NCBI RefSeq assembly: GCF_022045235.1
Contig: NW_027266264.1
Location: 46,562,001-46,626,000, forward strand
From: Haliotis cracherodii
Lineage: Eukaryota
Direction: 5' to 3'
Length of the DNA: 64,000 nt
In this document: one piece after another, positions 34,446 through 59,900 of the stretch
Position numbering within the stretch: position 1 is the stretch's first letter
Layout: the number at the start of each line of letters is the position of its first letter
Notes under the pieces: generated by a model
Database searches by the model: none
What the model saw: the letters and a program-made list of their open reading frames with translations, nothing else
Told to the model about the DNA's origin: nothing
Program-made: the position numbers and the translations under genes

Positions 34446-35573
34446 TCAGGGAGATCCTGACGCCATTCTCAGATGCGGATAGGCGGAGTATTGTCCACAG
34501 GAGAAGTGTTGTTGTAGAGCCTGGTAGGTTGCGTGAGGGTGACCGTTTCCTGCAGTGGGTGTAGGGGTTGGTGGCATATAAGCCCCACCCAGAGGCGAGC
34601 TTCCTGGAGGAGAACTGGAGAGAGGGGAGCCGGTCAGTGAGCTGTTCATGCTGCTGGCGTTGTAGTAGCCAGTTGTAGGAGAGTAGCCTGTAGGAGATCC
34701 CATTGTCCAGGTACTAGGATCAGGTTTGCTTCCTATACTGTATTGCTGGGGCTGGGTGAGTCCCTGGGGAAGGGAGCCAAGACTCAGGGGATTAAGAGCA
34801 GGGTAGGGGGACGGGCCCCCGTAGAGACTGAAATGGCCATAAGAACTCACATGCTGAATAGTGGCGTCTTCTCGGCGTTGTCTGTGCGCCAGTTTGAAAC
34901 GTTTAGCACGACGAAGGAAACTGCCGTTACCGAACATGTCCCCACAAGATGGATGCAGAGCCCAATGGTTACCCTTGCCTGGTTTCCCCGGGGGTCGGGG
35001 CACCTTGACGAAACAGTCATTGAGGGAGAGGTTGTGTCTGATGGAGTTCTGCCATCTCTGTTGGTTCTCTTTGTAATATGGAAACCTCTTCATGATGAAA
35101 CTGTATATATCGTTGAGAGTCATCATACCAGTAGGAGAACTCTCGATGGCCATGGTAATCAATGCAATGTAGGAATAGGGAGGCTTGACATTTTCAGCAA
35201 AGCGTCGATTTTGTTGAGACAGAGTTGATGTACCTGAATATTCATCTGAATCCTCGTCTTCGTCGTTGTCGGAACACACTGACGGCGATGGTGATGACTG
35301 GTTGCTCTGATCGTTGTCAGGATGCCCATGTTGCAGCAGATTGTCGCGAGTGTCGTCTGTTCCAGGAGATACTTCTGATTTGACGTCTGTTATCCCTGTC
35401 GTCAGACCTGGCATCGGGGGAAGAGACAGTGAAGGCGTGTGTGGGGACAGGATGTACGCTCCTGACATGGGAGGCCCCTGCTGCACGGCATGCGACAACG
35501 ACATCATACAGGAGGACTTGTCGTCTGCGCCACCTCCATACTGGAACAGATTTGGGCCTTGATTCAGCAACAT
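34446..35573 (-). CDS. FoxAB: Forkhead box transcription factor, FoxAB-like, copy 1 (375 aa, intronless; most canonical copy)
   Basis: Full forkhead domain [28 protein letters not shown]...[51 protein letters not shown]. Mixed FoxA/FoxB-type residues and the [15 protein letters not shown] tail fit the FoxAB subfamily. The subfamily call is from recognition, not a tree. Confidence 0.85.
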
Positions 35574-35826: not shown

Positions 35827-38800
35827 AGAGCTACTATATTGATTCCACACCCCTTCACTGGTGCTATACTGGGACTCAATATTATTGCATGAAGAAAACA
35901 TATCCAACAAATAGTAGCTTAATATTATTGTTAACGACTCAATACATCAGAAACAAATGTTTTGTTAAGATCATTGCTATTTTCCAAACATCTCTTTGAA
36001 GCAGCTCTTGTCGACATTGATTAAAAATTGATGAAAGATGATAACATATGTAAAATTAGTCACGTCGAAATTTGTCAGAATTTGTGCCTCAGCATTTCTA
36101 TTTTGTCGAAAGTCTGTCGAACGTGTCCAACCCGCACTTGATTTGTTGCATGACTCTGATATCATGGCTTTCGTTGATATTGACAGAAATACGATTATAC
36201 GTGTATCAAAATGTCTAGACCCGAGCTATCTAATAAGATGTCATTCGATCTGAACATGTGAGCCGAGAATAATTAATTGCTTAAATGGTCCCTTGAGTTC
36301 CCACTTGATGAATATATTGTTATGTTTTTATGTCAGAGAAAATGCACAATAAGGTAATGGAGTCTTGATGCAATGGCAGTGTTCACGGCCTCTGTATGCA
36401 TCTTTCCAATGGACTCTTCAACTGCTAGACATTAAAAAATCCCCAAATCCTTTCTTCGGGGAATATTTTGTTTTAATTGATTAAACACCCCGTTGTCCAG
36501 ACTTTACCTTGTAGATTAGAATTAGATTAGACCTTTATAATCTTCCTCACCGTAAAACCGTATTGTATCATCACGCTCAGACAATGCCTTGATCAGCCGT
36601 GACATCAGTTTTATCAGTAGTGAGCCATCATAGACTCCAAATTACACACGCCATATAATAGAGCTTCCCACTTCTTGAGCCTGCAACATGTATATTTCAC
36701 GGTCACATCCCCACCCCCGGGGTCGTAACGTCCGTGGCTAACCCCCGCCCTAGGCGATATGCGAAACAGGACCATTCATGATTTCTTGTCAATTTCAGTA
36801 AACTTGTATATGTTGAAAGTGAATATCATTGTCAATATTTACCGGCTGGATACTGACGTGTGTATATCTATTGCCTATGGTGAAATATATTTCGACAGTA
36901 AAATTGTCATTGAGGCACATATTTACATTGCTTCAAATAGCTTACGTTAGATTCAATTAAACACGTCAAGCTCACAGTTAAATGAATGTTACTCGTGATT
37001 TTCTTTAACCGTATTCTTAAGATGAAGAACCTTATTTTATTAAAGTGTCACACATTGTAAAGTGCAAGTATGACATTAAATAATCTTTACATGTATACAA
37101 TGTCCGGCCATATGGCCTAAGAGACACACAACTCAACATGTATACAAATATGCGTAAAGTAACAAGATGCATGTATAGATTTAAATACAGATTTCATAGT
37201 GAGGCTCTTCATCGACCTCTATATGTTCTTGGACCAAACAGGAACTAGTTTCCTGTTGAAAACATCACGAAGCTAATGAACTCGTTAACCGATCAATTTA
37301 TTAGATGAACATGTATTCGCTTCAAGGAACACAACATACATATCCGTGTGGTACCGTGGTCATTATTTCCTAATTAACTAGAATATATTGCGGTAACTTC
37401 AGAGAAAAATTAATTTCTATCTTCTATGCATAAACATGCCTAATCTAATGTGCACAGGGGATTTGTACCTTGTTGAGGGAGACGCGTTCTTTCGGAACGT
37501 AAGTATTTACGTCTATGTTTATGTTCAGCCTATGTCGGACGTGCTGTACAAATTGGCTTAAAACAAACTAACCCGATCCCCTTTCATTAAATGCGGATGA
37601 CGTGTTCGATATAATCGCCGTGGCGTCAGCAGCGCGCTTTCTCCGTGTTACAGGTGTAAAACTCCAGTTTCTGTTTTCTATAACTTCAAAGGAGACTCAG
37701 TTTCTTGCTTTTAACACAAAATATGTTTTAAGAAAAAAGGCTTGCGGTATTTGTTTTAATTGTTTTCCCTAGATGACTCAAGAAGATACACACATTGACA
37801 ATATTAGACTTTTCGGAAAATTCAAACGTTTGCTATTTTGAAGTGGTGTCAAAAGTGCGTTTTCCAAAATAAGTCTCTGATGTAAAAGAAGTGTTTTCAA
37901 TGCTTAACACCTTTATTTCAAGTAAACATGTCAAATTCACGCCATTGTCAATTTCCCCCATGTTGCTGTATACAGTACTTGAGCGATATTCACACTATTT
38001 GGCCATACACTTTGTGCTATACGTGACAGGATGTTGCAGGCAGGTAATGGCCACACGTTGGTGTTATTGTTATAACAATATATTACCACTTCTTGCTATA
38101 CCAACGAACCGAAATGGACATCATATTGGTTGAATCAAGTGTGAGAGGGTATATGCATAGAAGCAATATAATTGTTGAGGAGTATTTATCAGCATTGATA
38201 ACCAGTTACACATATACTGATAGTTAAGTGGTTTTTGTAGTAGTAGTTTTCACATGAAGGAATTGTATTGATACAAACCATATATACGCGCGTGTACAAT
38301 GCGGATTTATCATTGATAAGTATCATATAATTGTGTTCCGTTGATACCTGTTTTTTTGTTAGATGAATAGTGTAAGCATACATGATTAGTATTTAATTTT
38401 AAATTGTAAAGAAGACACACTACATTTAATGTATCGTAAAATTATCCAGTAACTATACATATCTTGAAATGCCAATTTGCAGTGGAACTAGCATGGCATT
38501 TCTTTTCAAGAATTTTTGGGGACAATTTACCCACCCCCAGAATATCAAATGGTCGGCCATTAATGTCAGTAATAATTTGGCCGAATTATCATGCCTACTG
38601 TGATTGATAATAACAATATGATAGTGTCCAATCGAAACACGTTATTATAATTAATTATGATTCTAGTATCATAGCTACACCAAACATGCTCCACTTCTTC
38701 AAAGGAAAACACGTAACGTATCGATCTTAACCCTGATGCTGGACGGGGAAGGCTTCATAAGCTAGTCCAGGTTTGTGTGTGCTACCAGATACAAGAGTGG

Positions 38801-39404
38801 ATCGAAATACTTGTTATGGGACCCCTCAAACTCACTGCGTTTCTATTGTGTTCGTGATTCTACTCATCTTGACTGTGTCCATCACTGGGGGAGCGAGAAA
38901 ACAGTTTTTGAAAATCTCACTTTCTGTGCAACAATATAAAATTTCGAGTAAAGAAAACATTACAGAAGCCACACTGTGGGTTATGAGGTTACCATAAATG
39001 CATAATACCTAGATAATGTACCTAAATATACAATATAAGATGTTTAATAACTTCTACCATACTCATACAGGTGAGAACAATTACATATTGTGTATGCAGA
39101 TAATAAAATCATGGTTCTCCCTGTTACCACTGCATGAACCTTAAATGCTAAACTATTTCCATGTCCTGGTTTTGCATTGAAAAGACATATTTGTCCACTG
39201 AACGCCTATCATAAACGTGCAGTCAAGTAAACTGTAATAGCAGAAAATGTCAGTCCAAATAGAGAGAAAAATCAAATATAGATTGAGTTTCATCCTCAAT
39301 AGGTCACAAACTTGTACTGGAGTGTGTCCATAATATATCATTACCCTTGAGTGAACTACATCCGTCATTGGGAATAGCCTTAAAACATACCTGTATCCTT
39401 CATA

Positions 39405-40645
39405 AGGAATCCCCTTAGAGTAGAGTTAAAATAAGTATCACCGTGAAGTGAGCAATGGTTCGTTTGCAAGGAATATGATACGATGCAGTACTAGTTTTAC
39501 TTACAATCAGCTATTTTGAGTTTAATTCCACTATGAACTGACATGTTGTGTATGAACCTTTATGTAGTGTATGAACTTATGTATAGTGTATGAACTTAGT
39601 TGCAGTCTATGAACGTATGTATAGTGTATGAACTTATATGTAGTGTATGAACTTATATGTAGTGTATGAACAAATGTGTGATGTATGAACTTATGTATAA
39701 TGTATGAACTTATATTTAGTGTATGAACTTATGTGTAGGGTATGAACTTATATATAGTGTATGAACTTATGTGTAGTGTATGAACTTATGTGTAGGGTAT
39801 GAACAAATGTATGGTGTGTGAACTTATATATAGTGTATGAACTTATATGTAGTGTATGAACAAATGCGTGGTGTTTTGAACTTATGTATAGTGTATGAAC
39901 TTATGTGTAGTGTGTGAAATTATATGTAGTGTATGAGGAATCACCTTGGAGTAGAGTTAAAATAAGTATCACCATGGAGTGAGCAATTGTGTGTTTGCAA
40001 GAGTGAATGATTGAGGTGGGTGTAACGCCGCTTTTAACATTATTCCGGTTATATCACGGCGTATCAGCTTAATATGGGAGGAAAGCCCGAAGTGATGCAG
40101 GTCTCAGACGTTTACCACTTCGGTGAAACCCACGAGCACGGGTATGGTGCTGACAAACCTAGAAACATAATCGGGGCGAACAGGGATTCGAACTCACAAG
40201 CATAGGTTTCTGGCGTGCCCAAGGGACACAACTCTGCACAGCGAATCGCGGCGCCTTAGACGACTGGGCCACCCGTGCCCCGTGTTTGCAAGAAATCTGA
40301 TACGATATGGTAGTTTAACTTACAATCAGCCATTTTGAGTTTTAACTCCATTATGAACTGACATGTGGTGTGTGAACTTATGTGCAGTGTATAAACTTAT
40401 GTGTAGTGTATAAACTTATGTGTAGTGTATAAACATATGTGTAGTGTATAAACATATGTGTAGTGTATAAACATATGTGTAGTGTATAAATATATGTGTA
40501 GTGTATAAACATATGTGTAGTGTATAAACATATGTGTAGTGTATAAACATATGTGTAGTGTATAAACTTATGTGTAGTGTGGTTTATGAACCTATGTGAA
40601 GTGCACGAACTGATTGTGGTGTATGAACTTATGTGTAGTGTATGT
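39405..40645. repeat. Two-unit tandem duplication, each unit a ~140-bp unique block plus a 19-bp minisatellite (agtgtatgaacttatgtgt)
   Basis: The block 'gagtagagttaaaataagtatcacc...acttacaatcagc.attttgag' occurs at ~39418 and ~39948. Minisatellites lie at 39548-39935 and 40368-40645. Confidence 0.88.
40003..40281 (-). mobile_element. SINE family B, full length, with 12-bp TSD
   Basis: Reverse complement of the 20433 family. gtgtttgcaaga is duplicated at 39991-40002 and 40282-40293. Confidence 0.9.
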
Positions 40646-40874
40646 CATTGATTCCCCGAGGGAGAGGAGTGTATAAACTAATCTTCTGGTGAGTGTACGA
40701 AAAAGAAGAGACAGCTTTTGTATACGTAGTTTATTTTAAGTATTAAGACAATACATGTATGCACAAGCTCAATTCTTTTAAGAACATTGCCGTATAATAT
40801 CTTTGGCAATATCTCGGTCATTCACATGCTTCAAATAGACATACTTAGCACTTATACGTCAAACAAGCTAAACG

Positions 40875-41981
40875 CTAAGCTTGATTTTCATAAGAAAGTG
40901 AACAAAGCGTATTTGTTTCATTCGGAAATATTGAGTTCGTAGCACTAACAAGGGAATGATGCAATGATGAATACAGACTGTGAGAATTTTGACTTCGACA
41001 TGTAGAGGGCATATGTGGCACGTTGACCCCACCCAGGGTAGAGCTTCCCGGGGGAGAGCTGGAGAGAGGGGAGCCGGTCAGGGAGCTGTTCATGCTGCTG
41101 GCGTTGTAGTAGCCGGCTGTAGGAGGAGAGTAGACTGTAGGAGATGTCATAGTCCAGGGACTGGGGTCAGGCCTATTTGCTGTGCTGTAGGCGTGTGTCT
41201 GGGTCAGTCCCTGGGTTATGGGGGGAAGACTTACGGGGCTGAAGCCAAGGTAGGGGGACTGACCTCCATATAAACCTAAAAGGCCATAAGAAGTAAGACG
41301 TTGGACGGTGGCTTCATCTTGTCGCTGTTTGTGTCCTGACTTGAAACGTTTAGAACGACGGAGGAAACTGCCGTTACCAAACATGTCCCCACAAGATGGA
41401 TGCAGAGCCCACAGGTTACCCTTGCCTGGTTTCCCCGGGGGTCGGGGCACCTTGACGAAACAGTCATTGAGGGAGAGGTTGTGTCTGATGGAGTTTTGCC
41501 ATCTCCGTTGGTTGTCTTGGTAGTATGGGAATCTCTTGACGATGTAGTTGTAGATGTCGTTGAGAGTCATCATGCCTGTTGTAGAACTCTCGACGGCCAT
41601 GGTGATGAGAGCCACATAGGAATAGGGAGGCTTCTTGTTGGAAAACTCTCTTTTCTGTTGGGAGAATGTAGACGTTCCTGGCCCACTGTTACGACTCGTG
41701 TCATCGTCGTCAGTATCTGAAGTAAGTGATGCGGGTGGTGACGGGGTAATGCTGTAATGACTCGTAGTCTCTACTGTGTGACGAGGAATGGATCTCGCTT
41801 CAGATGTAAAATGGCGTTGGTCATCGGGTACGAACTTGGATGTGTCGTCTGCTTCCTGGGCAACTGCAGACGTCCAATGAGTGACTGGAGCGTGGTGTTG
41901 AAGAAATTGGAGAGATGTCGTCTGTTGCGACATGCAGGAAGAAGCATCCTCGCTGTGTTTAAACGTGGATGGGTTAAACAT
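40875..41981 (-). CDS. FoxAB: FoxAB-like forkhead transcription factor, copy 2 (368 aa from ATG 41981)
   Basis: Intact forkhead domain. The ATG at 41981 (MFNPS) aligns with MYNPF of copies 3/4 and lies 81 bp downstream of the TATA box. AATAAA (-) at 40730-40735. Confidence 0.83.
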
Positions 41982-42059
41982 GTTTCTTGACACAAGCTCC
42001 GGGGAGAACAGTTTTATCTCAGTAGGAAGAGAAATGTTTATCCTCTCCCTCAACCACAA

Positions 42060-42199
42060 GGTTTATATTCCCTGTCGAGATTATCCCCTCGTCAAACGCT
42101 TTACAGAACTCATTTGTTTCTTGATTAGGCGTCCATTGTTTCTCCAACTGTAATGAGACTAGGAGGTGCTTGCTGTTCAGGCTACACAGAGCTGATTGG
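42060..42199 (-). promoter_or_regulatory. Core promoter of Fox copy 2
   Basis: TATAAA (-) at 42062-42067, TAATCA (-) near 42122, CCAAT (-) at 42195-42199. Confidence 0.6.
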
Positions 42200-45100
42200 T
42201 TTAAACGTTAACTCCACCTTTATAAGCATGTTATTCATCAAATGGACATGTCGCATTTTAATAATTTTGTTCAAAGAATAGAAAATGCCCTGTACGCTAT
42301 TTAGATCAACCTGTTTATTCATAAGGATTATTTAGGAAACCCTCGACAGAAATGTTTCCAAATTGATGGCATTAGCATTTAGTGTTTTACGCGTACAGTG
42401 TGTTTTGTAGTGTGTGTTTCACACCTCTTTTACACACATCAACGATGTCAACATTAATCTTATCAGGGATACTTACTGAAATATTGACATCAAAACAAAT
42501 CAGCACAACAAATTCTCGGTTTTACAATATCGATAATCACAGAAACAAACATTCCGCCAGCATACTAACTGTAGAAATAGCCGCTGAAGATGCCTCTTGG
42601 TCAACATAAGTTACCATAAGTTAATATACATAATTAATGTATGTCAATATACAAATGCGGGTGCTATTTGACAGAGGTAATGTTCTGATTCACCTAATGT
42701 TTTAAGGATTTGTCGGTTATGGCTCCAACAAAGCTAAATTTAAGACAGTACATATTTCTTACTCCTAAAATAGCCCGCCATCTTATAAGTTACGTTCTAG
42801 TAATCATGTTTATGTTATGACGTTGGGTAAATTGCACCAGTTCTTTGCAAAAATATGTAAATATGTAATAAACAGTGTGTGGGAGATTAATACCATTATC
42901 TACTTGAATTTTCCCTATTCTAAAGAACATAAGGAAAGTATACAAAGACAAATATCACAGTGTACATATTCATCCTTGTTTATAAGTTCATTCTTCTTCC
43001 AGCGCAGCCAGCAGAGAGACGCACATGTATGTTATCACTTAGAAAACTATCTACACTTGTCAACTCTGTCTTAATGCTCCATGGCACTTCGACTATGTGT
43101 ACAGCCATGTGAGGTGAGGCATTGTTATATTATATCCATGTACGTCAGTGGTTTTTGTGGAATAAGATTGTTTATAAGATAGATGTAGCGATTGTCATTA
43201 TGAATCCACATGCCTGTCATTCTATTTCGGTCAGATTAACACTTTCAATAATACGTAGGTGGATAATTTTTGAACTAGGAAATGAACATCACAAGATAAT
43301 CAAGCGCCTTGAGGTTCGTGCATTTCCGTTATTAATTACACAAGTAATCGTATCGGGGAGTCTTAATGACACATTTAATGACTTGTCGCTACACCGATGG
43401 ACGCCACAACAATTCAGCACTCCACTTCCCGCGTTGGCAGTATCGATAATCAAACGCCCTCCAGTCTGTGACAGTAGCTACACAAGGGGATTGTTGACAT
43501 AATGTGATGTATGTTTTGTTTTTCTCGCTAAGCTATATCAATTCTATAAAATCCTCATGCCATTATTTAAATCAATCTGGAATTAATAATAATGTATCGC
43601 TTGATATTGTACATTGTGTAATTTTATATATGCATTTGTGTTATGTCTACGATGTTATGTGAACAGTTATGTTTACAGTGTTATAGATACATGTTATGTA
43701 CGCTAATGTCACTTTTTACTTTTACTGAGTACAGTAAAGTTCGCTTCAGTTCGGAGAATACCTGATCCACCAAGGTGTACATGCCTTATTATTGTTCTCT
43801 TCAGAAAGGAGGAAGCCACCTTTATGAGTTCCACCACCCACAATGAACCAGACCGACCCTTGAGTCATGTACAAATGAATGTTTACGTCATTTAACAAGG
43901 GACACGTTTCTTGATTATTGTTGCGATTAGTAAACAAATATTAATAAAACTGATGATGAAAGTTCAACAGCTGCAAACATGACAAAGTTTTGTACTGATT
44001 AAACTGTAAAAGCAGGGTTGTATGTTAAGTCCGATCCTGTTATCACTCTTCATGAACTAATTACACAATGAAATGATTTTGTAAAAGAAAACAAGTGCAG
44101 AGACATTTGACTATTGGTCTTTACGCTTATGGACTAAGGTGTCATTTATTCAGTGTATTGTGTTCCCGGAGCTTTATCTGATTATGGATACTACCTCCAT
44201 GATCAGTGCATTTCTCTAGCTATCGCAATGTAGAAAGACTTCCTAAAACTTTATTTACACCAATGAGCTCATAGTGACGTATTCGCTGAGCTAACGTCTT
44301 GAACATATCCGCGCTCCTAATTACACGCTCAGCTGGTGACATTCACACGTCTTCATTGACCACGCCGTGACTTGAACATGTACATCACACCTGAACCAAA
44401 TCCCTACCCACAGGCTTCACGTGATGGACACATCGCACCCCAATCGCTGGACCCCCGGGCCTGTGTCCAGTATGGCAATCTCTGGCCCTCATTGTTGTGG
44501 TTAAACACCAGTATCAATATTGGTTCAGCAAGCTTTCATGGTTTGTGGCATGTAGGTTCAACGTTGTTTCCAGGAGAAGTTTGCTTGCTGTATTTGTAAT
44601 TTGTTGTAATCAAGCTAGATCTCTACACCATCGACCTGCTAACACGCGAAGTTGTGGACGCTTAACCTCAAGAATATGGAATATATAGACGTTGAATATA
44701 TATGAGGACTTGGAGGGAAAACCACTTCGGGGCCATCTGTAAATTAGCATTTAAATATTGTGCATTATAAACTGAATTTTAACCTGAGAAGATGTTACCA
44801 CATGAGGCGGTTTACATTGTGGTCCACAATTGTGTAACACTAATCATGTTGTTGGTAGTAGTGTTATACAGCAAATAAAGCGACACGACCCTTTCCATAT
44901 CCAATAGAAATCTCTGCATAAAGCAGTGTCGATTGTACGATTCCAACTATATCTTGAACATGTGTCTATGAATTACTGTCGAACAGTAATGACATCAAGT
45001 ATTCGCGAAAAGATGAGCGTATCCTGCCCAACCGGTGGCACCCGTCCCAAACACATGCAAAGGCAAGTCAATTGTTCACCTTAAAAACAAGTCCAAATAG

Positions 45101-47887
45101 GGAATTGCATCGGACATAATTTTTGTCACTGATGCGTAAAATTTGGAAATGTCCTTCACATGTTTACCATAATTATTTTTGAAAGCTTTACTGACGCCTT
45201 GAATTCGTATTTGTGGAAAGTATTTGGAAAGCACTGTGTCAGCACTAAGATGTCCAAAATGTTAAAGTCAATTTATGGTAATGTCAAGTCATTTTTATAT
45301 CAGCAAATGCAGTGAGCTAAAAATATCAGTACATGACGTCAGAGCTTGTATGATCAGCGCGGTGTATTTTCGTCTAAGTGAAACTGTTCAACTGTTAAAC
45401 ACCAGAACTGGAGTGGTCGGGTGCAATCCGAACAACAAACACTTGAGGCTTGATATACCCCACAGATACACTGGCATTCAGATGCTCAACACCTACAGGT
45501 TGACTTGTGTATTTTTCAGGTGTTTCATATCTATCCTGTGTGTAAATATACACGTGTTGATATGTTGGATAATATCTTGCCAGCATATGTTCTGTTGTTA
45601 TTTTTATTTTGCATAGTGTTACATGTCACTATGTTATTGGTAAGTAAAACGCTTTCCCTACCAAATGTGATCAAACCAAACACGTGTCTGTTTATATGTT
45701 TACGATTGTTGCAGACGCAGACTATCTGTTTCTCCACCTTACTGTTTACCTGACGATGTCGGTGCATTTGATGTTTCCACAGTTAACAAGAGTCAATCAG
45801 CGGATAAGGATTAGCAGACGACAGCTACCAATTTTGATTTATCAAATTGAGATTATCAGTTGTAATTACAAGCGGTTGGGTATTTGCTGTTTTCTGTAAG
45901 CTTATTTTCTTAATTTACCTGTGAGGTACAACCAGCTTTATTAAGTAAGCCAATTTTCAGAATTGGCTTACCTCAAACCGCTTTTCTTCCTTCACATCCA
46001 TCGAGTCGGAGGATGAAGGTAAGTAAGATGGCGACGATGGTGGACTTTCCCTCATGCGACAGACGTCAAGATCCAATTTTCACAGAAGGCCGATATTTAG
46101 TCACCTATAAGTCACCTATAATGTCAAATCATGTCATGTTTGCATTGACCTTAAGTTTGAATCGCTCTATCCTCGTGGGATGTACGTACAAACAGCGATG
46201 TCTGAAAGGTTCCCCTCCGTTAACATATAATGACGTCATTGTCTGTTTAGGGCATTACCTTTCGTTAACAAATCATAACGTCATTGTCTATTTAGCGCAA
46301 TTGTGATTATTGTTATGTATTAGTGATGCACCATCAACTGTAGACATTACCACTCTACATCATTTAATGTAAGTTGAATATTTATTATATTAACCATGTT
46401 TATATGACACGTACGGCGGTAAATATCTCATTGTTCCTATAAAACAAACATAATTATAAAAGTATCCCATATGCTCCTTATAATCTATAATTCATACAGT
46501 TTTGCATAATTGAATATTCTTTTAAATTTGACGCAACAGAAGGTACTTCACGTTACATCACAGGGCGTCAGTTTCATGTAGGAAAGACGCAGCTTATAGA
46601 AGGGAAACCCGAGAGAATGGATATGTATGGTAGTATAAGGTAATGTACATCATGGGTAACAACTATGTTTAGAACATATAGTTTATATATTTATTTATAT
46701 CAATCATGTTTTACTGTCTCTCATAACCTAATGGATGAGTGGCTTTCGTGCATCTTTTTATGATTTTACACAATATTTTGCTTTTCCTTTGGAAGAGAGG
46801 CCGGTCACGTGACTGTGATGACTGACGTTCACAAGTGTATGAAAAACACACTTTGATGTTCAATACGTTTTTCACGAGAATGTATTCTTGAAATGACCGT
46901 AAACACTGACAGACTACTTACACATACAACAGCGTTGTTTCTGATCATTCAGACCCTTTAATCTTGAACTCATACATTGAGAAACGTCAGAGAGTTTGAC
47001 TGCATGATCGTTCCCGAATATCCTCGCTACGACCCACCCTAGTGGACAAAACATAGACATGCTTATCCACTATCGTAGTATCGACTCGATCCGTGTCTAG
47101 ACTCACAGTGACAGCCTACAACAATCTATGAATTTACCTTGGTATCTATTTGACACATCTTTACAATTACCTTTCAATGATCGGCCAACTGATCAATGAT
47201 GACCAACACATGTAACCACCACAGGTAGGTTTTCCGTGTCGGCCATTCTGACGTCTTGTACGTGATGTAAATGTATTACGACGCGCTGTCATTGTGACTT
47301 ACTGAGGTAGTTCTTAAAAGACCTTTCTCACCCAGTGATGATATTATTTGAATACAATTCTTGTAAACAAACTACAACAGATGTTCCTGAAAAGCAAGTT
47401 GAGCATACAGACGCTCGCGTCACCTCTCTGGGGAACTATTTTATTCCGCGATACAGCTGGTTGTTGTATGGCCGTCAGTCAGTGCAAACATGAAGTAACA
47501 CGTATAGACCTAGTGCTACATCTCTTGGGGTATAAAAAAATGATATAAAACATAAGAGAATCTGGGATCCGAACACTTGACAAGCGGATGTTCGGACGCA
47601 ATTCTTCGCAACGAGATACGGCGTAATGAACTAGAGGGCCAGTTCCAGGACGCTTCATCGGTTAGAGAGAGAGAGTCCCTCCTGGACACAAAGTGAAGGA
47701 CTCACTTCCGGCTTAGGTGCCCTTTGATGATGCCGACGGCCAGGTGTTCCACGTGCCGAGTCTGAATACTTCAGTACGTTCAAGTAAATAAATACAAGTC
47801 GCCATTACAAGTCTGGGGAAGTCTGATCTCCTGTAAATCCTAAACATCCTATGTACACATAGTCTTGACTTAATAATGTTGAGTTAA

Positions 47888-47980
47888 GTTATTCGAACCC
47901 TCGATCATAGGTTTTTGGCGTGTCCAAGAGGCACAATTCAGCACAGCGGCGCCCTATACAACTGGGCCAACCGTGCCTCC
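47888..47980 (-). mobile_element. SINE family B 5' fragment
   Basis: attcgaaccc...ggcgtgtccaag.ggcacaa...actgggccaaccgtgcc matches the head at 40185-40281. Confidence 0.7.
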
Positions 47981-48369
47981 GCAGAGGTAGATATGTTTTT
48001 TAAACATGGCATATATTTGAAAAGTTTGTGGCAAAAATCTTTTTGAGCTCGATTCAGCTGTTTTATCGTTTTATCTTGCTATTGCTATAGTTGTCCTTAA
48101 TATTGTCGGGGAGTCAGGATAGGATGAACTCCCGCATGCCACCTAAAGGGGGACAGCGTGCCACCGTTAGCTGCCCTTTTCATTCTAGGTAAACACGTTG
48201 ACTCGAGGCAAGTGGTCAGTGGTTTTCAATGCTACAGGGAAGTTGCGATTTCAGTTATTTCGTAAAATGCCAAGACATTTCGTGCCCATATCTATGTTCA
48301 TAGTGATATATTTGTCCCCACTGGCAATGACGCACAGAATTAAGCGACCTGTATATGACCTCGCGGATC

Positions 48370-48640
48370 TAGTGTTCATATCCTGGTATATGTCTTTTGC
48401 AGAATCGGACATTGGCTGTTGTATGGGTGAGTGCAGCTAGTCACAGGAGAGAGGGCAGCCGTATCGTGTAGGCACCACCCAGGGGAGAGCTATCGAAGGA
48501 GACTTGGAGAGGGGGGAGCCGGTCTGATCCCATGTTCAGATCCCATAGTGCAGGTTCTGGGGTCAGACTTGCCCTATGTGCTGTGGGGATGTGTCTAGGT
48601 CAGTCCCAGGGGTAAGGGGTCAAGATTCAGGGGGTTGAAA
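48370..48640 (-). pseudogene. Relic FoxAB-like copy: C-terminal coding portion only, forkhead box absent
   Basis: Collinear with copy 3 at ~53075-53391: 'gaatcggacattggctgttgtatg', 'ggagaggggggagccggtc', 'gatcccat', 'tgtgctgtggggatgtgtctaggtcagtcccaggggtaagg..tcagggggttgaa'. Similarity stops before the forkhead box. Confidence 0.8.
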
Positions 48641-51600
48641 ATTAAAGGTGAATCATCTTGCGGCCTGGGTATACAATGTATAATTTTCCCAGATAAACTC
48701 TCTTCATTGAGATCTGTTGTTTTTTTAAATTCAGTATGAAAATAACAAATAACATTTATAATGATACTGTCGCTTCACTTTTAACGTATTGCTTTAAACA
48801 TTTGCATTAACATTCTAAACTGATTATTCACGTCGAATCTGCATAACGACTGTACGTACATATACATGTAAAGATATTACTGATATACGGGGTCACAATC
48901 AACCTTGTGTGACAGCCAACGTTTCTCGGCGTCGACAGGCGAGCACGATTTAGGACACGCCGCACACAATTAGTTTGCAACTAATTACATACTAATGGTT
49001 TGACGTTTCACCTCAATTTTCCACAGGGTACCTGGATTATGTGCATCACGCCCAGATAAAAATCCTCGCCCAGGGGCATCAGGTGACGAATCCAGTTTCT
49101 CCCCAAGGCCTATGTCCCGTGTCCTGTCGGAGTAAATACCAGGGTCAATATTGATTCTGACCCATATGTCTGCTCCATGACATGGTACCTGTTTCCTTGG
49201 AAAGTTTCCAGCCTGTAGTAACTGGAGTAGGTAGAATAATATCAGATTGAAGACATTATCTATCCAATGAAGCCTTCAATATGTCCAAATAAGTGTTTTT
49301 CAGATGTGTTTCAAACTCGACAACGTGTTTGAGCAATTGTATGTAACTGGATACCAGCGCTATATATATATCCATATATGTATGTATGTAACAAAAGAAT
49401 ACTATCCTATACATTAATTATGGTTTACGACTTCGCAACCGTCTTTGTACAAATGATGTAAAATTATTCTTTAGGTTATTTGCCTTCATTAATCAAATTC
49501 TTTTATCTCTTCTTGTTGTGTTGTGTTGCGACTTATTTTTCACAAAATTGTACACGTGCACATCTCTGTGCATATAAGTCTGCATGTTTATACTTCTACA
49601 TGTACAAAATTGTATATATATAATGTTACTGTATGTATATGGGCCTATGGCCAGAATACAATAAATGATGATGATGATGATGTAATGTGTATAACTAAGA
49701 TAACAAACTCCACACATGAAATATATTTATATGTTACAGTAAAAGTGTAAAATGACTGAAATTTTCACTTGTGCAATTTACTAAACGCCAAACAGCTCAG
49801 TCAATTTACAATACATCCTTCCATTCATTATATTATGATAATGAAATTCCAAACATTTGTATGCTCTCTGTCACATAAATCGTGTTATGTAGGTATGAAG
49901 TAAAACGTGTCATACTAATGTGATGGTCATAAGTTGGGCAACCATACAGACTGAAGACACGTAAAACATGCCATGTAAATGTCCCAAAAAACATTTTACA
50001 CAAAAAAATAAATCCTAGCTATTTACTTCATGACCCAGTCTATGACGATATAGCGGTTGTTTCGTCACTTTAACTCCCAATGATGACGTCAATTTACAAA
50101 TTATATAGACCTTGAATTTGATTCAATTATTTGGATATGCCATTGTCAAACTTTAGATTTGAAATGAGTTTAGTCTATTGCCATATAGCCTAAGTTAATG
50201 CTTATTGTCCATTTAAAGTTGTTTTATTTGTCAAATGGCTATGTGTATATGTAACATGGAAGGATCAATTTGAGACTGGAGAATATGTCCCCACTGAAAC
50301 TCGTAAAGCATTTGAACCAGGACAAGCTGACACAAGTAATCGTAACGGGGAGACTTAATGGTGCGTTAAATGAGTTGTCTCTGCACTCAGATGTCATAAT
50401 AAATCAACAAATCTAACAGCTGTAAAAACATCCAATCTGTGCCAGCAGCTAATCCAATGTGGATCGTAAATCATCGTTCTGGGATATATAAGATAGAAAA
50501 TGTTAAAGGATATTACTAGTATTTACAAAACAGAACAAAACTGATTGATAGATGTGATCTTCAAAAATTCATCTATGGCTGATTGTCATTACAGGTATAC
50601 TCTTCCCTTTAAAAAGAAGAAGATTTGTTTGGACACTTGCTGAATTAACATGACTATACTATAACACACGCATTCGTGTAAATACTTTACTTATTTCCAT
50701 CTGAACGCCTTAAGCATGTTGTCATTAGAGTGACAAAACAAGTGGTTACAATGTTAACATGCTGTTTTGATGTCAGTAGCAGGATGAAACTGTCTGTTTC
50801 TCCACCTCAACGTTTTACCTGACGATGTCGGCATATTTGATGTTTCTATAAGGTAACAAGATTCAATCAACCCTGGATTAGGGCTTGTGGGGTTAAGCAA
50901 TTGTGGCTTGATCAAATACAGATTACCATTTGTCGGTTTCCTGTTTGCTTAGCTTCCTAATTTACCGGTAAGGAACAACCAGCTTTATTAAGCAAGCAAT
51001 GACGAACATTATCCGATCTTGTGAATTGGCCTACCAGAAACCGCTTATCTCCCTTTACCATTCTCCCGTCAGTGGATGAATGTAAGTAAGATGGCGACAT
51101 AGTGGACTTTACTGCACGCGACAGACATTCAAATCCAATTTCACAGAAGGCCGACTTAATACCTTTTAATATGCATATTATATATATACACATATATATA
51201 TTTGTATAAGGGGTATGTAACAAAACGAAAACAACCACATAGTTCTACATGTCTACCTTCATGTCATCTTGTCATGTGCTTTATTTCATACATAAATGAT
51301 GTAGTTCTAATGAAAATAAAGGGTAATTGATTGGAACATCTTAACGTTGTTTTGTGTGTTGTTTTACATCATTCACAACGCACGTGTGTGAATCTCATCT
51401 TGTCAAAGCCTTGGTTCATACCAGATTGATTTGATGAGCATGTGGATGCTTTTGAAGATATATTTTCACGATCATTAGGTCTAGAGCCAATTTACACTGA
51501 ATACTACATGGAATCAAGGTTATCATTTTACATTTATGATCACTATTCCAATATCCCCCACGACCTTCCCCAGGCGCCTGATAATTCTGATATTAATGTT

Positions 51601-53022
51601 CATAAGCGTTTTCTCTCAAACTTATTATTTTATACACAAATTGTTTATTCTGCACAGTCACACATTGCATCGTAATCAAGGCAAATCTGGGATTCGAACC
51701 CACATCACACTATGTCACTCCATTGACACAGGCCCACATCCACGAGCTGAGACATTGATTATGTTTGTTGCTTCTGCTGGTGTAAACCAATGTGCATGTT
51801 TATGTATAATCGGTTACATGCCTTTGGGTAAAAGTTTAAGAATAATAGCAATAATGTTCTTACTGGAAGAATGGCTAATGTTCACAGGTGTCCACAATGC
51901 TAGAAATTCCGCCTGTGTCCGGCTTCTGATGGGTTGGATTTAAGATGGGTACGAGGTGACAAACGTGTTTTCAACTTATGTTACTTAATTACATTAATCC
52001 AACTTAAACACATGCAAAAATACACGATGAGTCTAAACTATGATCAATTCATAAAAGGGGTTAATTACCGATAGTTCTTTTTCTGTCCTGGCATGTTCAC
52101 AAGCATGTATAAGTGGATCGGTTTAATATTTAGGAAATAAGCATTTTGTGTTTCAGCGTAGAGTTGGTTAACTGTAGATATAACCATGCAAAATTGAATT
52201 CTGAATAAAAGGAGATCACATTGAAACAAGACATGACATTGTTTCCTTTGAATTCTTATTTGTATTCACCAAAAGCTTGCAGGTGTCACTATAGGATGTA
52301 TGTAATAGATATAGTACTGACACAACTTCTCTGTCTATCTCAGCGCGCAAGCAGATACTCGAGTTCTACAAACTATACCGTGACTGCAGATCGTACAAAC
52401 TCCACCATCACATTCGGAGCAGATTGCACGATTACATATAAACTGTCCGGATCATGCAGTTACGTTTGTTGTTGAAGGCCTGAATTTTGAATGTACACGT
52501 TTCACGAAGCTGGAGAGTTTCACGCCTTTATAAACTGTTTACTTTGGAATACTTTATCAGTGTAAAATGTACTCCATCATCACAAAACAGTGACTATCCA
52601 TTGGACAAAAGTATTTGCCTGTGCTCTAAGGGATACTTGTAGCTGAATCGGCTTGTACACCGCAAGGCAGCAGGTCTCGGGGTGCACACGACAGAGGTGT
52701 ATAAAATACAAATGTACAAATAAGTCTTGTTAATTTCATTTATTTTATTTCTATATTTAGTTCATGTTGTACATTATGTAACCATAAGTATTTTACCTGA
52801 ACGCAACATATTGTTACTGTAAGGCAATATATACCGTATGTTTTCAGTTAAATACACACAATACATATTTGACAATACAGATATGATATTGTCAGTAGTA
52901 TTGCCATCATATTCAAAGCCACGAATTGTCTGTCATGCACCAGATGTTGAATCAACTTATATTCCTATATAGCACTTGTGTATATCAGTCTTCATTATCG
53001 CACCAGCAGGGGTGTATCTACA

Positions 53023-54099
53023 CTAAGCATGGTATGATCTCGTGGACCTTGTGCCCCAACTCTGACTGATGTCGTTTGAAGAATCAGTCATTGACTGTTG
53101 TATGTTTGGATACAGGTAGTTGCAGGAAGGGTCAGGTATGCTTAAACTGGGTGAGGGAACTTGTGGCGCGTATGTTCCGGCCAGTGGAGAGCTTCCCGGG
53201 GGAGAGCTGGAGAGAGGGGAACCGGTCAGAGAACTGTTGATACTTCTGGTGTTGTAGTAGCCGGCTGTAGGAGGAGAGTAGCCTGTAGGAGATCCCATGG
53301 TCCAGATACAGGGGTCCGGTTTGCCTATTGTGCTGTAGGGGTGTGTCTGGGTCAGTCCCGGGGGTAAGGAGCCGTGACTCAGGGGGTTGAAGCTTGTGTA
53401 AGGAGATGGACCCCCATACAATCCCAATAACTGTCCGTAAGGACTGGCAGGATGGAATGAAGGATCTTCTCGACGTTGCTTTTGTGCGGACTTGAAACGC
53501 TTAGAACGACGAAGGAAACTGCCGTTACCAAACATGTCCCCACAAGATGGATGCAGAGCCCACAGGTTACCCTTGCCTGGTTTCCCCGGGGGTCGGGGCA
53601 CCTTGACGAAACAGTCATTGAGGGAGAGGTTGTGTCTGATGGAGTTTTGCCATCTCCGTTGGTTGTCTTGGTAGTATGGGAATCTCTTGACGATGTAGTT
53701 GTAGATGTCGTTGAGAGTCATCATGCCTGTTGTAGAACTCTCGACGGCCATGGTGATGAGAGCCACATAGGAATAGGGAGGCTTCTTGTTGGAAAATCGT
53801 CTGTCTTGTTGTGAGAGGGTGGATGTTCCCGAGAAACCGTCCCCTTCTCCGTTCGAGGATACCGATGAGGTAGGAGACGGAAGAATGTTGTCATAATTTG
53901 GAGATCCTTGTTGCGTGTGACCTGATCCATGTGTGATCAGGGATCTGACGTCTTCTCCCTCAGTAGCTCCAGATGTCTGAGACACGACTGGGACGGAGTG
54001 TTGTGAAGATATGGAGTGATCAGATGGAAGAGGTGTCATCTGCTGTCCCATGAAGGGAGATGTACCTGGGACATACTGGAACATGAATGGGTTATACAT
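53023..54099 (-). CDS. FoxAB: FoxAB-like forkhead transcription factor, copy 3 (358 aa)
   Basis: Intact intronless ORF and forkhead domain. TATAAA (-) at 54183-54188, CCAAT (-) at 54334-54338, AATAAA (-) at 52739-52749. Confidence 0.85.
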
Positions 54100-55129
54100 G
54101 ATTCCTGGCTCAATGTGCAGCAGGTGAGAAATGTATTACCTCAGTAGGCAGAGGAATGTTTATCCCCCTCGTCACGGCGAGGTTTATAGTCCCTGACCAG
54201 ATAATCCCCTCAACACGCGCTTTACAGATCTCAATTGCCTCTAGATTAGGTAGCCTTTGATATGTAAATAACCGTATGTCGTCACTGATAATGGGCGTCG
54301 CTCTAAAACATCTTTCAAAAGTTTTTAGGTACGATTGGTCAAGAGCTATAATCTCGCCGTTCACTTGTGAGTTGCATTACAGTATATGAAATATGTGCTA
54401 TTATTCGCACGAAAGACGTTACATCCACCAGTGTGTTCATAACGATGACGGAAAGTAATAAAAAAACACTAGATTACAATAAGTGTGTTAATGGTTAAAT
54501 AGTTGTAGCATGGATTCCTTTCGAAAGGCTTATAGACTTTGAAGATGTCGAAAGAAAAGGCACCTCACATTTAGTATTTATAGAAGTTGGTATACAATAT
54601 GAACGATCTTGTGACTTCTACTCGACTGTAGAAGTGTCACCATGTTCAGTATATGTATATTGTGGACGAGGAACCGGTTGGTTCAAGTCTAAGTAAAGTT
54701 TATGTTCTGTTCAGTACATAGCTGACACCAACAATCGTATTGGGTAGACATATTGCTGTTTTCTCAAGGATTGTCACCGAGCTTATTGATATCCCAACAA
54801 ACCAAAACCACACTATCAAGGGCTGTCAGTATCGGTCATCACAAATACAACAACAACCTGTCGGTGTTAAAAGCTCAAATGTAGGTGGTTGTATTGGCAT
54901 TGCTACTGTGTGCAATACTCGAAGATGGGGACGTGCCAAAAATTGCACCATAAGATGATTTTGTTTATGTTGACATTGATTATTAAAAATATATTTGTCT
55001 AAGATACTATAAAACCACCACAATAATATACTATATACGTTTCATTATGGGTGCAGATAGAATATGGCTGATTTCGGCGTTAAACAACAATGTAAACAAT
55101 CAACTGTGTATAGTTCAGGCTGCAGACAG

Positions 55130-56050
55130 AGTATCTCACAGCATAAATATATTAGTGTAAAAGGGGTATATAAAATATACTACCGGTCACTAGCCATATA
55201 AAATATGTTTTCTTAGTTGGAGAATTAAAATGTAGGTTTGGGCTGTGTAATATACATAATATTTATAAAGTAAAATAAGTTTATCAGTATTAATAACTCT
55301 AGTAAGTTGGAATAGCTAAAACTGACCTTTGCGTATAAACCTTCACGCAAATCATCGTACACAGGGAAATCCAACAATACATGACATTCATCCCCAACAC
55401 TTTCCTGACACTGAAAACACACTCTTTCATTCACATTCATATTCGAATATCTGCCTGTTTCCAACTTCAGATCTAAGAAGGCAGAGTGGTTTAGAACGAG
55501 GCATATGCATACTAACATAACTTTCACACCCATACACATCTTTAAACATTCTATACGTACGTAAGTTATTACCACCCGTTCTTCCGAGAGGCTTGCGTAA
55601 CAGTTCATTCCAATCAGTCACATAAAATCCCAGGCAGATAACCTGCACACCTGCAAGTACACTTTTCACGCTCACATTCTCTAAAATATTCAACCCCCAT
55701 TCGTTCAGCTTTGCCAGTATATCAAACGTACACAAGCATACCGTTCAGACCACATAAAACATTCTTATTTAATCTAAGGAGGTTCTAGTAAAACGATAAT
55801 ACTGTAACAATACACATCCACTATCTAACTGTCGGAGGAATCCATCCCATATCTCCATTAACAGCAACATTTGGAGCGTATTTACCCAATCCTAAAATAA
55901 ATCTCAAAGCACGATGGTGAACGGCATTTACAGTAGAAATGTCACGATGACCCCAGATAGATGCCCAAAGATTCAAGACTGACCAAACCATCGTATCGTA
56001 CAATTTGGAATAAGCAGTGGATTGCATACGTCCGATTGCCTTAGCATTGT
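55130..56050 (-). mobile_element. LINE 3'-end fragment (L2/CR1-like)
   Basis: 'YSKLYDTMV..VL..ASIWG...ALRFILG...PNVAV.GDMGW', 'NLRTYRMFK', 'LKLETGRY...ERVCFQC...DECHVLLD.P.Y'. Related to 31790-32524. Confidence 0.8.
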
Positions 56051-56589
56051 AGTCAAAATGTGTGAGTGAGGTTGGTTTAACACGGCTTTGACACTACACA
56101 TGCTGTCCATTTACATGGTGCTGTACTAAGTAAACAAATGCTAATAATTACAATCTCAAAATGAGCCATTAAATGACCAAAGTCACCATAGGCTGTCTGA
56201 AAGATGTACACCACACCCTGTAGGATAACCCCTCACCCAAGGGCGTCAGGTGACATATCCGCGGACACCAGTGTCTTCCCCGGGTCTATGTCCTGTAGCT
56301 ATAGAAGTAAGCACTAGGGTCAATATTGATTCAGACCCGTACATGCTTACGAAATATGCAGATATTTCAGTTTATTCACGAAATGCACATATCTACACAT
56401 ATCGACACATATGCACAATGTATAATTAACATATTCGAGGTTATAAAACCCAAATTAAACTATACGATTATAGTGTCAAAAGTAAAATTATATAAATTAT
56501 AAATTCTCTTATCGATCGGGTACAATATTTTGCTTGATGCTTTGACAGATACAGATATCAATAACATGCTGTGATTAATGGCACTGAAA

Positions 56590-56915
56590 GAACAAGCCAT
56601 GCGTTGCAAGGAGTTCCAGTATTCCAAAAGATCAAAGAAGCAGGACTAAACATGCAAATGTAAATGTGCGACAAAATAAGTCACCCACTTAGGGCATATT
56701 TTCAGCAAAGATGGCATCCATGCCAATATACTTCAAAAATAGATTCAGTCACAGAGATCCCACCCTCTAAAAATGTCCATGACGTGTGTCACTTCTTAGA
56801 TTTGGTCTCGTATGATCACAAATTTGTAACACAAATTCTGGTATCGCCTCCCCCTCTATACAATCTTCTGAAAAAAGACGCATCTCTCAAATTGTGGCAA
56901 ATTAGGGCAACTTGA
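56590..56915 (+). mobile_element. Ty3/gypsy pol (RT thumb/connection) fragment
   Basis: 'LGHIFSKDGI', 'KIDSVTEIPPSKNVHDVCHFLDLVSYDHKFV...PLYNLLKKD'. Confidence 0.75.
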
Positions 56916-59900
56916 TTCTCATGGCGTAACTTGGAGTGATGTTGTTAAACCGCGTCTTTTGACCATACAAGAATCTTCCTGTTCTGATTTTTAGGAACAA
57001 ACAATGTTGACTGGTAACGTTTCGTTTTCGTCAGTTTTCAAGGAAGGGTATATGGTGCTTTATGATCATTTCCCATCACAGTCAACAACTGTTATGGCCT
57101 GATGAAATGGAAGGTTTGAAATGATTATTAATAAATAAAGGTTACAGGCCTACTGTCTCTCTGTCAAAAACACTGTATTGATCAGGATGTCCATATTGTG
57201 ATCCAGATGGAGGCTGAGTTTTTTTTATTGAAATAAAATTAAGAACCCCCCCCTCCCCCAGAAATGACACAATCAAATGACACAAGTAATCGTAATGGGG
57301 AGACTTAATGGTGCGTTAAATAAGTTGTCTCTACACTCACAGACATCACAACAAATCAACACCATGCTCTGTCACATTGTCAGCACATGTAACAGCAGTA
57401 ACAACATCCAATCTGTGTCAGTAGCAGTGGATGTGCGGAATATTATTCTGGGATAGTAAAGGTATACAATCTTAGAGGATAGTAGTTTTAATGCTGAACA
57501 AAAATGACTGACTAAGCTGGCAAAATAGAAATGAATTCCCTGACTGAATGCCATCATATTTTTCTTTAAACAAGAATACGTGTTCTTTTCTTTAATTAAG
57601 AAGACATGTACATGGTTATGCTACATATGAATACACTTGATATGTTACTAAATACTGAAAGTTTATTAGAACAGAGAAAGCTAGCACAATTTGTAAAATA
57701 AAAAGTAGTATGTAGTATATACTGTATGTATAAAATGTAGTGTTACACACGCCTTTGTGTCACTACTTTACATCTGTCCATAAGTATGTTGTCATTAGAG
57801 TGTGGTTACAATGCTAGAGTGGTCAGAAGCAGGGTGGGGCGAATTTGATGACTACATGAGTGACCGAGTCACTCAACCCTGGATTGGAGCTTGTGATGCG
57901 AAGCTAGGCCGCTACCAATTTTGGTTTGATCAAATAGAGATTATCATTTGTCGGTTTCCTGTTTGCTTAGCTTCCTAATTTACCTGAAAGGAACAACCCG
58001 TTTTGTTTAGCTACCAAAGACTAAACTTATCCGATCTTCAGAATTGACTTACCTCCGGATCAGAGGATGAAGGTAAGTTAGATGGCGACAGAGGCGGACG
58101 ATACTGCGCGCGACAGACATTCAAATTCAATTTCACAGAAGGCCGACTTAATAACGATATATATTTATACCCATCCACCCAAGGGTTGCCCAAAAGATTA
58201 CCTTGTCCAAACTTAGCATTGGTTCACCGAATATTCTAATCAATTACCCTTTATTTTCATTAGAAGTACATCATTGATGTATGAAATATGTAGAACTGTG
58301 TGGTTGTTGTTTTTTGTTTTAAGATAACAACACATAAATAAATCGTACTTATTATCAAATAGAAGAAAATGCCTTTCTCACATCACTTTTCTTTAAAAAA
58401 TAATGGCATATTCTTACATTCTTAAAGTGTTTTTTTTTTATTTCTTCACGTAACACGTGCTAAGTATACATACTATTACACACGTCAGTACTTTACTTAT
58501 TTCCATGTACACGCCTTAAGCATGTTGTCATTAGAGTGATAAAAGAAGTGGTTGCAATGTTAACATGCTGTTTTGATGTCAGTAGCAGGGTGAGACTGTC
58601 TGTTTCTCCACCCCAAGATTTTACCTGACGATGTCGGCATATTTGATGTTTCTATAAGGTAACAAGATTCAATCAACCCTGGATTAGGGCTTGTGGGGTT
58701 AAGCAATTGTGGTTTGATCAAATACAGATTACCATTTGTCGGCTTCGTATTTGCTTAGTCTCCTAATTTACAAGTAATGAACAACCAGCTTTATTCAGCA
58801 AGCAAATGACGGACATTATCCGATCTTGTGAATTGGCTTACCAGAAACCGCTTATCTCCCTTTACCATTCTCCCGTCAGTGGATGAAGGTAAGTAAGATG
58901 GCGACAGAGTGGACTTTACTGCACGCGACAGAGGGATTCAAATCCAATTTCACAGAAGGCCGACTTAATACCTTTTAATATGCATATTATATATATACAT
59001 ACAGATATAAACTGATATAAAGAAGATGATGTACTAACGTGGACTTTATTATTTTATTATATATTACATGTACACCGAGTGAACATTTACCTCATTTTTG
59101 TATATATATATATATATTTACATGTAACAAAACGAAAACAACCACATAGTTCTACATGTTGCCTTCATGTCATCTTGTCATGTGCTTTATTTCATACATA
59201 AATGATGTAGTTCTAATGAAAATATAGGGTAAATGATTGGAACATCTTAACGTTGTTTTGTGTGTTGTTTTACATCATTCACAACGCACGTGTGTGAATC
59301 TCATCTTGTCAAAGCCTTGGTTCATACCAGATTGATTTGATGAGCATGTGGATGCTTATGAAGATATATTTTCACGATCATTAGGTCTAGAGCCAATTTA
59401 CACTTAATACTACATGGAATCAAGGTTATCATTTTACATTTATGATCACTATTCCAATATCCCCCACGACCTTCCCCAGGCGCCTGATAATTCTGATATT
59501 AATGTTCATAAGCGTACTCACCTTCTCTCAAACTTATTATTTTATACACAAATTGTTTATTCTGCACAGTCACACATTGCATCGTAATCAAGGCAAATCT
59601 GGGATTCGAACCCACATCACACTATGTCACTCCATTGACACAGGCCCACATCCACGAGCTGAGACATTGATTATGTTTGTTGCTTCTGCTGGTGTAAACC
59701 AATGTGCATGTTTATGTATAATCGGTTACATGCCTTTGGGTAAAAGTTTAAGAATAATAGCAATAATGTTCTTACTGGAAGAATGGCTAATGTTCACAGG
59801 TGTCCACAATGCTAGAAATTCCGCCTGTGTCCGGCTTCTGATGGGTTGGATTTAAGATGGGTACGAGGTGACAAACGTGTTTTCAACTTATGTTACTTAA

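Follow-up and report, generated by a model that had tools for sequence, protein, structure and literature searches.

A candidate cis-regulatory block with a forkhead-like palindromic core recurs across a tandem array of FoxAB-type genes in Haliotis cracherodii

We analyzed a stretch of 64,000 nucleotides from Haliotis cracherodii (NCBI RefSeq assembly GCF_022045235.1, contig NW_027266264.1, positions 46,562,001 to 46,626,000 of the forward strand), hereafter the window. It holds copies 1 to 4 of a FoxAB-type forkhead gene and a forkhead relic, together with a recurrent non-coding block of about 170 bp that carries a palindromic 12-mer near its end and that we consider a candidate cis-regulatory element (Table 1). 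A search of the genome with copy 3 showed that the array continues beyond the window (46596524-46697352 in contig coordinates) and spans ~101 kb of the minus strand, with ten intact FoxAB-type paralogs and two relics. The DNA past the window end was included in our analysis, and the profile searches described below were run over it; positions there are given in coordinates continued from the window.

By their forkhead domain and a reciprocal best match to a named FoxAB protein, the cluster genes are provisionally assigned to the FoxAB class. The domain (PF00250) was recognized in them with expectation values (E) of 1e-37 to 1e-38. The Saccoglossus protein named "fork-head box A/B" matched the ten genes at E=1e-67 to 1e-53, copy 1 being the best, whereas no other forkhead gene in this genome did better than 1e-43 with the same query. 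Among solved structures, the forkhead domain is nearest to FOXA2/3/1 (E=6e-45). The nearest database proteins come from Haliotis, and the names given to the abalone paralogs are inconsistent (E3-, D2-, B1-, B2- and lin-31-like). Because several paralogs are annotated in each of four Haliotis species, the FoxAB expansion appears, from these annotations, to be genus-wide in abalone. Little is understood of the FoxAB class. According to a 2022 survey, FoxAB expression had been studied in one spiralian only, an annelid (PMC9539403), and our literature search found no description of the abalone FoxAB expansion or of its regulation.

An initial annotation of the window, made from the letters alone, had drawn attention to four related 12-mers starting at 36831, 44513, 49144 and 56319, all of which are present exactly as it wrote them. 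It had placed them ~1.3, 2.5 and 2.2 kb upstream of the start codons of copies 1, 2 and 3 and ~0.5 kb from the relic, in agreement with the distances that we measured, and had anticipated an equivalent for copy 4 past the window end, where one does lie (Table 1). With the continued DNA, the inventory comes to ten blocks and one bare site, that is, eleven sites. The orientation of the blocks relative to the genes is fixed, and they lie 0.7-2.5 kb upstream. Because block B4 is 100% identical to B3, it does not count as an independent observation.

The degenerate pattern RYMAATATTKRY that describes the 12-mers has five matches in the window (the four sites and an unrelated one at 17382) against 0.79 expected, a number reached by 0 of 100 shuffles. 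Across the 1.18-Gb genome it occurs at 22,645 places, or ~1 per 52 kb, compared with 13,658 for a reversed control. Enrichment over this background frequency, a question that the initial annotation had raised, holds for the window but fails as independent evidence, because the four sites are copies by descent; the enrichment statistics were for this reason set aside.

Table 1. Blocks, genes and other features of the FoxAB-type array. Positions are those of the window; "continued" denotes coordinates counted on past its end.
Feature	Position	Strand	12-mer	Remarks
Block B1	36679-36842 (12-mer 36831-36842)	+	GTCAATATTTAC	1258 bp upstream of copy-1 ATG
Block B2	44366-44556 (12-mer 44513-44524)	+	ATCAATATTGGT	2532 bp upstream of copy-2 ATG
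Block Br	49024-49184 (12-mer 49144-49155)	+	GTCAATATTGAT	505 bp from forkhead fragment of relic; own gene dead
Block B3	56172-56377 (12-mer 56319-56330)	+	GTCAATATTGAT	2220 bp upstream of copy-3 ATG
Block B4	64088-64257 (continued)		GTCAATATTGAT	site 235 bp past window end (64235); 100% identical to B3
Block B5	past window end		GTCAATATTGAA	
Block B6	past window end		ATCAATATTGAT	gene dead or missing
Block Bc6	past window end		ATCAATATTGAC	
Block B115	past window end		ATAAATATTGAA	4.1 kb upstream of copy 7; gene-less unit
Block B7	past window end		ATCAATATTAAC	
Bare site	1207 bp upstream of copy 9		GTCAATATTAAC	no flank homology
FoxAB-type copy 1	34446-35573	-		375 amino acids, intronless open reading frame; best match to Saccoglossus FoxAB protein
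FoxAB-type copy 2	40875-41981	-		368 amino acids from ATG at 41981
Forkhead relic	48354-48639	-		gene fragments, 71-80% identity to copy 3; forkhead fragment 48538-48639
FoxAB-type copy 3	53023-54099	-		358 amino acids
FoxAB-type copy 4	60934-62010	-		7.8-kb tandem unit, 99.1% identity to copy 3 unit
TATAAA box, copy-3 proximal promoter	54183-54188	-		85 bp upstream of ATG
Module X	43334-43420, 50318-50548, 57278-57511			retained in several units
Module Z	45719-46093, 50656-51200, 58323-59009			retained in several units

Three of the in-window sites had been described as lying in clearly homologous sequence (44376-44530, 49040-49165 and 56205-56340), with weaker similarity near 36685-36842, and both statements are borne out by profile searches. 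A motif-free leave-one-out profile of Br, B3 and B5 matched B2 at E=3.9e-15 (E=4.5e-20 in a whole-genome profile search), and B7 was matched by a motif-free profile at E=1.4e-9. Pairwise identity is 60-62% between B2 and Br, B3 or B5, and 68% among the latter three. Block B1 was matched at E=4.5e-4 by an eight-block profile that excluded it and at E=8.1 by a five-block profile; the score of its left flank against B2 was reached by 10 of 500 shuffles, and its comparison with the other blocks was not significant. The left flank of B6 is likewise weak (4 of 500 shuffles reached the score against B5, 22 of 500 that against B3). Nearly all recognizable block sequence has been lost from B6, yet it keeps a 15-mer identical to that of B3. 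Bc6 stood at E=0.16 prior to its inclusion in the profile. For the site upstream of copy 9, homology to the block is unsupported, since 225 of 1000 shuffles reached its score against B7; we nevertheless keep it as a probable block remnant because it shares the derived 11-mer of B7. The 12-mer of B5 also occurs at 29486-29497, ~5 kb past the 3' end of copy 1 and with no detectable block homology around it, where it may be a chance match or the last trace of another unit.

The block stands out from the DNA around it. In global alignments of ±1 kb, identity was 0.3-0.45 except over ~150-200 bp ending at the 12-mer, where it was 0.5-0.77, and ~400 bp of non-repetitive DNA beside B3 are unconserved. 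The block is thus conserved above the surrounding non-coding DNA, its flanks being in part transposon insertions. Within it, invariance is concentrated in the core: of 181 columns aligned across nine distinct blocks, eight never vary, and seven of these fall in the 12-mer (the T at position 2 and AATATT). The longest invariant run, the six columns of AATATT, was reached by 0 of 100,000 column permutations, and the best 12-column window, TCAATATTGATT, has a mean conservation of 0.89 against 0.58 for the block (0 of 20,000 permutations). As a control for the bias of a motif-anchored alignment, the test was repeated with the five blocks that are homologous without the motif. The longest invariant run was then the 8-mer TCAATATT, reached by 27 of 100,000 permutations. 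Judged from these alignments, nothing in the block is as strongly conserved as T(C/A)AATATT, and the block in turn is an island in unalignable DNA; both observations support the earlier suggestion that the core is under constraint. The block also contains short stretches that we take to be CACACCC/CACCC-type and CAGGTG/CACGTG-type sub-motifs. On this evidence the block is probably a selected cis-regulatory element, a reading to which we assign a probability of about 0.75.

The core resembles a known forkhead element. In the available text of two reports, the DIV0 element is given as AAATATTT, in which the central TA is shared, and is described as bound cooperatively by FOXA1 and FOXO1 with strict spacing (PMC6009666, PMC8034652). 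All 11 sites in the array read xxxAATATTxxx, that is, two diverging half-sites that share the central TA without a spacer, so that the divergent overlapping dimer geometry proposed in the initial annotation matches the published arrangement. The compact, strict spacing and the enhancer-like DNA are common to both, whereas the sites described here are mostly CAATATTG, with C/G in the third place counted from the center, and 4 of the 11 second halves are degenerate. The left half-site fits the consensus RYMAAYA in 11 of 11 sites, and the right one in 7. The canonical DIV0 core is not reached in full: its A/T occurs only in the right half of B1 and in the left half of B115. These are also the two places where a change at the M position keeps the consensus, and both changes create canonical half-sites (GTAAATA, on the minus strand, in B1 and ATAAATA in B115).

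Further forkhead-type sequence lies beside the palindrome. A canonical monomer-type site, (T/G)TAAAYA, is found 6-8 bp to its left in B2, Br, B5, B6 and B7, and in B3 and B4 the corresponding site is degenerate (GTAAGCA); the stretches concerned in the window are 44495-44512, 49125-49143 and 56300-56318. The paralogs share a recognition helix, as had been claimed and as is seen in their alignment, and the FOXA-like nature of their forkhead domain also favors a reader of this family. The half-site GTCAATA is said to be a strong HNF3 site of the transthyretin promoter, for which our literature search gave no support. We tentatively favor a forkhead protein as the reader of the core, at somewhat less than even odds.

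Several observations weigh against a selected element read by forkhead proteins. For B1, B6, Bc6 and B115, the motif itself supplies part of the anchor on which homology was judged, and part of the contrast between the island and its surroundings stems from transposon insertions on both sides. The identity of the blocks of copies 2 and 3 (60-62%) is no higher than that of four-fold degenerate sites outside the forkhead box (61%), so that it is the core that carries the argument for selection. The right half-site is broken at the outer R in B5 and B115 and at M in B7 and the copy-9 site; because of these four cases, a strict dimer site is not what has been conserved. Most half-sites have C where DIV0 has A. 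The RYMAAYA consensus is moreover very degenerate, with 4.99 matches per kb here, and of the four substitutions seen inside the window, three are transitions falling on R or Y, so that the consensus is kept automatically and cannot break. The earlier claim that every substitution preserves it on both strands holds for the four in-window sites and fails for four of those that lie beyond the window. Copy 10 and relic 2 are without a site, copy 7 has just one half-degenerate site, 4.1 kb away, and Br, B6 and B115 persist in units whose gene is dead or missing. Finally, at least one perfect ATCAAT/ATTGAT, the sequence bound by Onecut proteins, is present in 7 of the 11 sites.

This last point leads to the alternative that survives best, in which the block is the same cis-regulatory element but its core is read by another factor, the lead candidate being a Onecut/CUT-homeodomain protein. 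ATCAAT/ATTGAT is the sequence recognized by HNF6alpha (Onecut) in the available text of one report (PMC1976457). A reader of this type would make the block a shared upstream input to the genes, with no self-regulation. In three sites the palindrome amounts to two inverted Onecut cores, and the unequal conservation of the two halves is more in keeping with one oriented site than with a symmetric dimer site. However, B1, B5, B115 and the copy-9 site are without a perfect ATCAAT/ATTGAT, and what stays invariant is the T together with the central AATATT and not the hexamer ATCAAT. The Onecut core is lost through C-to-A in B115 and through G-to-T in B1, and the same two changes create the canonical forkhead half-sites mentioned above. 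The natural variants here thus move toward the forkhead consensus and away from that of Onecut, and both M-position changes fit, as sequence, a forkhead reader and not a Onecut one. We consider a non-forkhead reader unlikely, though with an appreciable chance of being correct.

The block could also be a neutral leftover, the slowest-decaying patch of duplicated intergenic DNA, with a core that stayed invariant by chance, through an old micro-conversion or because, lacking CpG, it mutates slowly. The cluster does undergo gene conversion: in the comparison of copies 2 and 3, 44 of 45 four-fold sites are identical inside the forkhead box, compared with 42 of 69 outside it; the converted tracts lie at 41340-41633 in copy 2 and 53491-53784 in copy 3, and copy 1 shares a homogenized tract over helix 3 and the wing (34893-35056). 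From the pattern of these sites, gene conversion is confined to the forkhead box, which it homogenizes. Outside the box, copies 1 and 3 are identical at 34 of 77 four-fold sites, and third-position identity between copies is as low as ~0.25 in places. Divergence of this order indicates that the duplication units are old. Whole-gene synonymous divergence (dS) is 0.57 between copies 2 and 3 and 1.0-1.1 between copy 1 and the rest, values that understate the age of the units because conversion in the forkhead box deflates them; we rejected dS as a neutral clock and take it as a lower bound only.

The match between block identity and four-fold-site identity, the persistence of blocks beside dead genes and the sharpening of the island edges by transposon insertions would all be expected of such a leftover. 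On the other hand, the invariant runs are reached by few permutations or by none, the perfect 15-mer is kept in B6 though the rest of that block has decayed, the flanks are 60-72% identical, which speaks against recent conversion of the block, and the adjoining non-repetitive DNA is unconserved. We therefore regard neutral persistence as improbable.

Copies 3 and 5 share 98% identity over a stretch that begins in the 3' flank and ends ~170 bp before the ATG, where homology drops sharply (at 54269 and at continued coordinate 70018), and the block of copy 5 is just 72% identical. The position of this break points to a mosaic duplication or to the boundary of a conversion tract.

Even less probable, in our view, is that the block is transcribed, be it as a small non-coding RNA gene or because the Fox genes use it as an alternative promoter or first exon. 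Its fixed placement upstream of every gene is compatible with such a role, and small or rare RNAs would be missed in the contigs that we compared. These came from two runs, X1 and X2, of a relative diverged by ~5%, and were guessed to be RNA (none is recorded as RNA). They tile 52963-54169 over copy 3, with a low-depth piece at 54197-54420, and end ~15-20 bp downstream of the copy-3 TATAAA box; over 56134-56531, which includes block B3, their depth is zero. A 5' exon or splice from the block was rejected, as there is no AG acceptor where the X1 contig departs from the reference (54169-54171) and the 26 loose letters of that contig match nothing in the window. A known structured RNA was rejected as well: an Rfam search over 33-64 kb of the window gave 0 matches, and the consensus fold of the alignment is weak (-7 kcal/mol) with an unfavorable covariation term. 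The picture fits a proximal promoter and an untranscribed distal block, although contigs of this kind prove neither where transcription starts nor that it is absent.

In their proximal promoters (54100-54260 and equivalents), the paralogs have in common a TATA box, CCAAT boxes and a GGATTA-type site. Close to the likely transcription start there is also an ATAAACA-type site, which was considered as support for forkhead input and rejected, since it is kept in copies 1-5 only and single sites of this kind are too common.

A derivation of the block from a dispersed transposon, which the transposon-rich neighborhood of B3 and the dispersed repeats on both of its flanks could suggest, is highly improbable, since its matches in the whole-genome BLAST and profile searches are confined to the cluster and its sequencing depth is that of single-copy DNA. 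A BLAST search with B3 against the 1.18-Gb genome returned 4 hits, all inside the cluster (4 candidates, 4 scored). A sequence-only covariance model run on the whole genome found six cluster blocks at E=1e-13 to 1e-26 and B7 at E=2.6e-5, and elsewhere one noise match at E=8.28; as 150 of 56,397 first-look candidates were scored, very weak relatives of the block may have been missed. In X4 and X5, DNA-like runs whose contigs span the block and whose divergence of ~2% is too small to lend power to a test of conservation, depth over B3 is 61-66, compared with 1,000-90,000 over its flanks. The possibility raised at the outset that the surrounding block is itself a dispersed transposon is thus not borne out at the sensitivity of these searches, and the block is cluster-specific.

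The flanks of B3, at 55200-56043 and 56617-57168, are dispersed repeats with 75-86% identity on many chromosomes. The left repeat extends over 54940-56043, and its part at 54940-55138 has a depth of 83,000-90,000 in X4 and X5 and of ~8,000-9,700 in X1 and X2. An open reading frame of 127 amino acids lies inside it (55225-55608).

If the block is a selected element read by a forkhead protein, it would be a distal cis-regulatory module of the ancestral FoxAB duplication unit that was copied with each gene. Purifying selection would have retained the T(C/A)AATATT core and, less strongly, a number of further short sub-motifs, in the midst of intergenic DNA lost to decay and to the insertion of transposons. 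The core would be read by a forkhead-domain protein, the FoxAB paralogs themselves and/or FoxA. Sites with two intact diverging half-sites (the DIV0 geometry, in which they share the central TA) could be bound by a cooperative dimer; at sites with a degenerate right half, a monomer could occupy the left half-site, which is intact throughout. The outcome would be positive auto- and cross-regulation and co-expression of the array, and blocks in gene-less units might serve neighbor genes as shadow or shared enhancers. The analysis itself shows that the blocks are homologous and confined to the cluster, that their core is constrained and matches the DIV0 geometry, and that mRNA-like contigs lack the block; enhancer activity, the binding protein, its dimerization and the direction of regulation are what we infer in this scheme.

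Its parts do not deserve equal credence. Dimeric cross-regulation among the paralogs, judged from the sites, is doubtful. A bolder version, which we find less probable again, would make the array one mutually activating, dimer-dependent switch: any paralog homo- or heterodimer would bind the DIV0-like palindromes of all units, orphan blocks would have been preserved to serve as shadow or shared enhancers, and the paralogs would all remain able to read the common site through conversion of their forkhead box. Protein and site would in that case be co-maintained across the tandem array.

Autoregulatory enhancers or promoters are known for several forkhead genes, among them vertebrate FoxA2, Drosophila fork head and C. 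elegans pha-4. As in those cases, forkhead-type sites lie here upstream of a forkhead gene and positive feedback is proposed; unlike them, the element is replicated in a ten-gene tandem array and survives in gene-less units. The similarity island, its collinearity with the genes and its several short sub-motifs also recall the non-coding elements retained between tandem paralogs, except that conservation is known here among the paralogs of one genome. Forkhead autoregulation and DIV sites are both already known, and the element would be a new instance of them in an array.

A ten-copy array with an inherited element constitutes a natural variant series, with intact palindromes, two kinds of half-degenerate sites and units without a site. 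Matched to the expression of the paralogs, the series provides a test of compact forkhead dimer sites outside vertebrates, and also of how regulatory elements survive tandem duplication and gene death. Should the reader not be a forkhead protein, the element could still be used as an entry point into the regulation of the array.

Two further non-coding modules, X and Z, are collinear in several units with 69-97% identity (Table 1). Open reading frames at 23355-25168 and 31790-32524 resemble fragments of a transposase and of a reverse transcriptase, as judged by eye from their translations. Tandem-repeat arrays occupy 29836-31061 and 39402-40644 in the window and 85980-90558 and 120951-121561 in continued coordinates; the last of these has a unit of ~47 bp, each copy of which contains AATATTGAAG.

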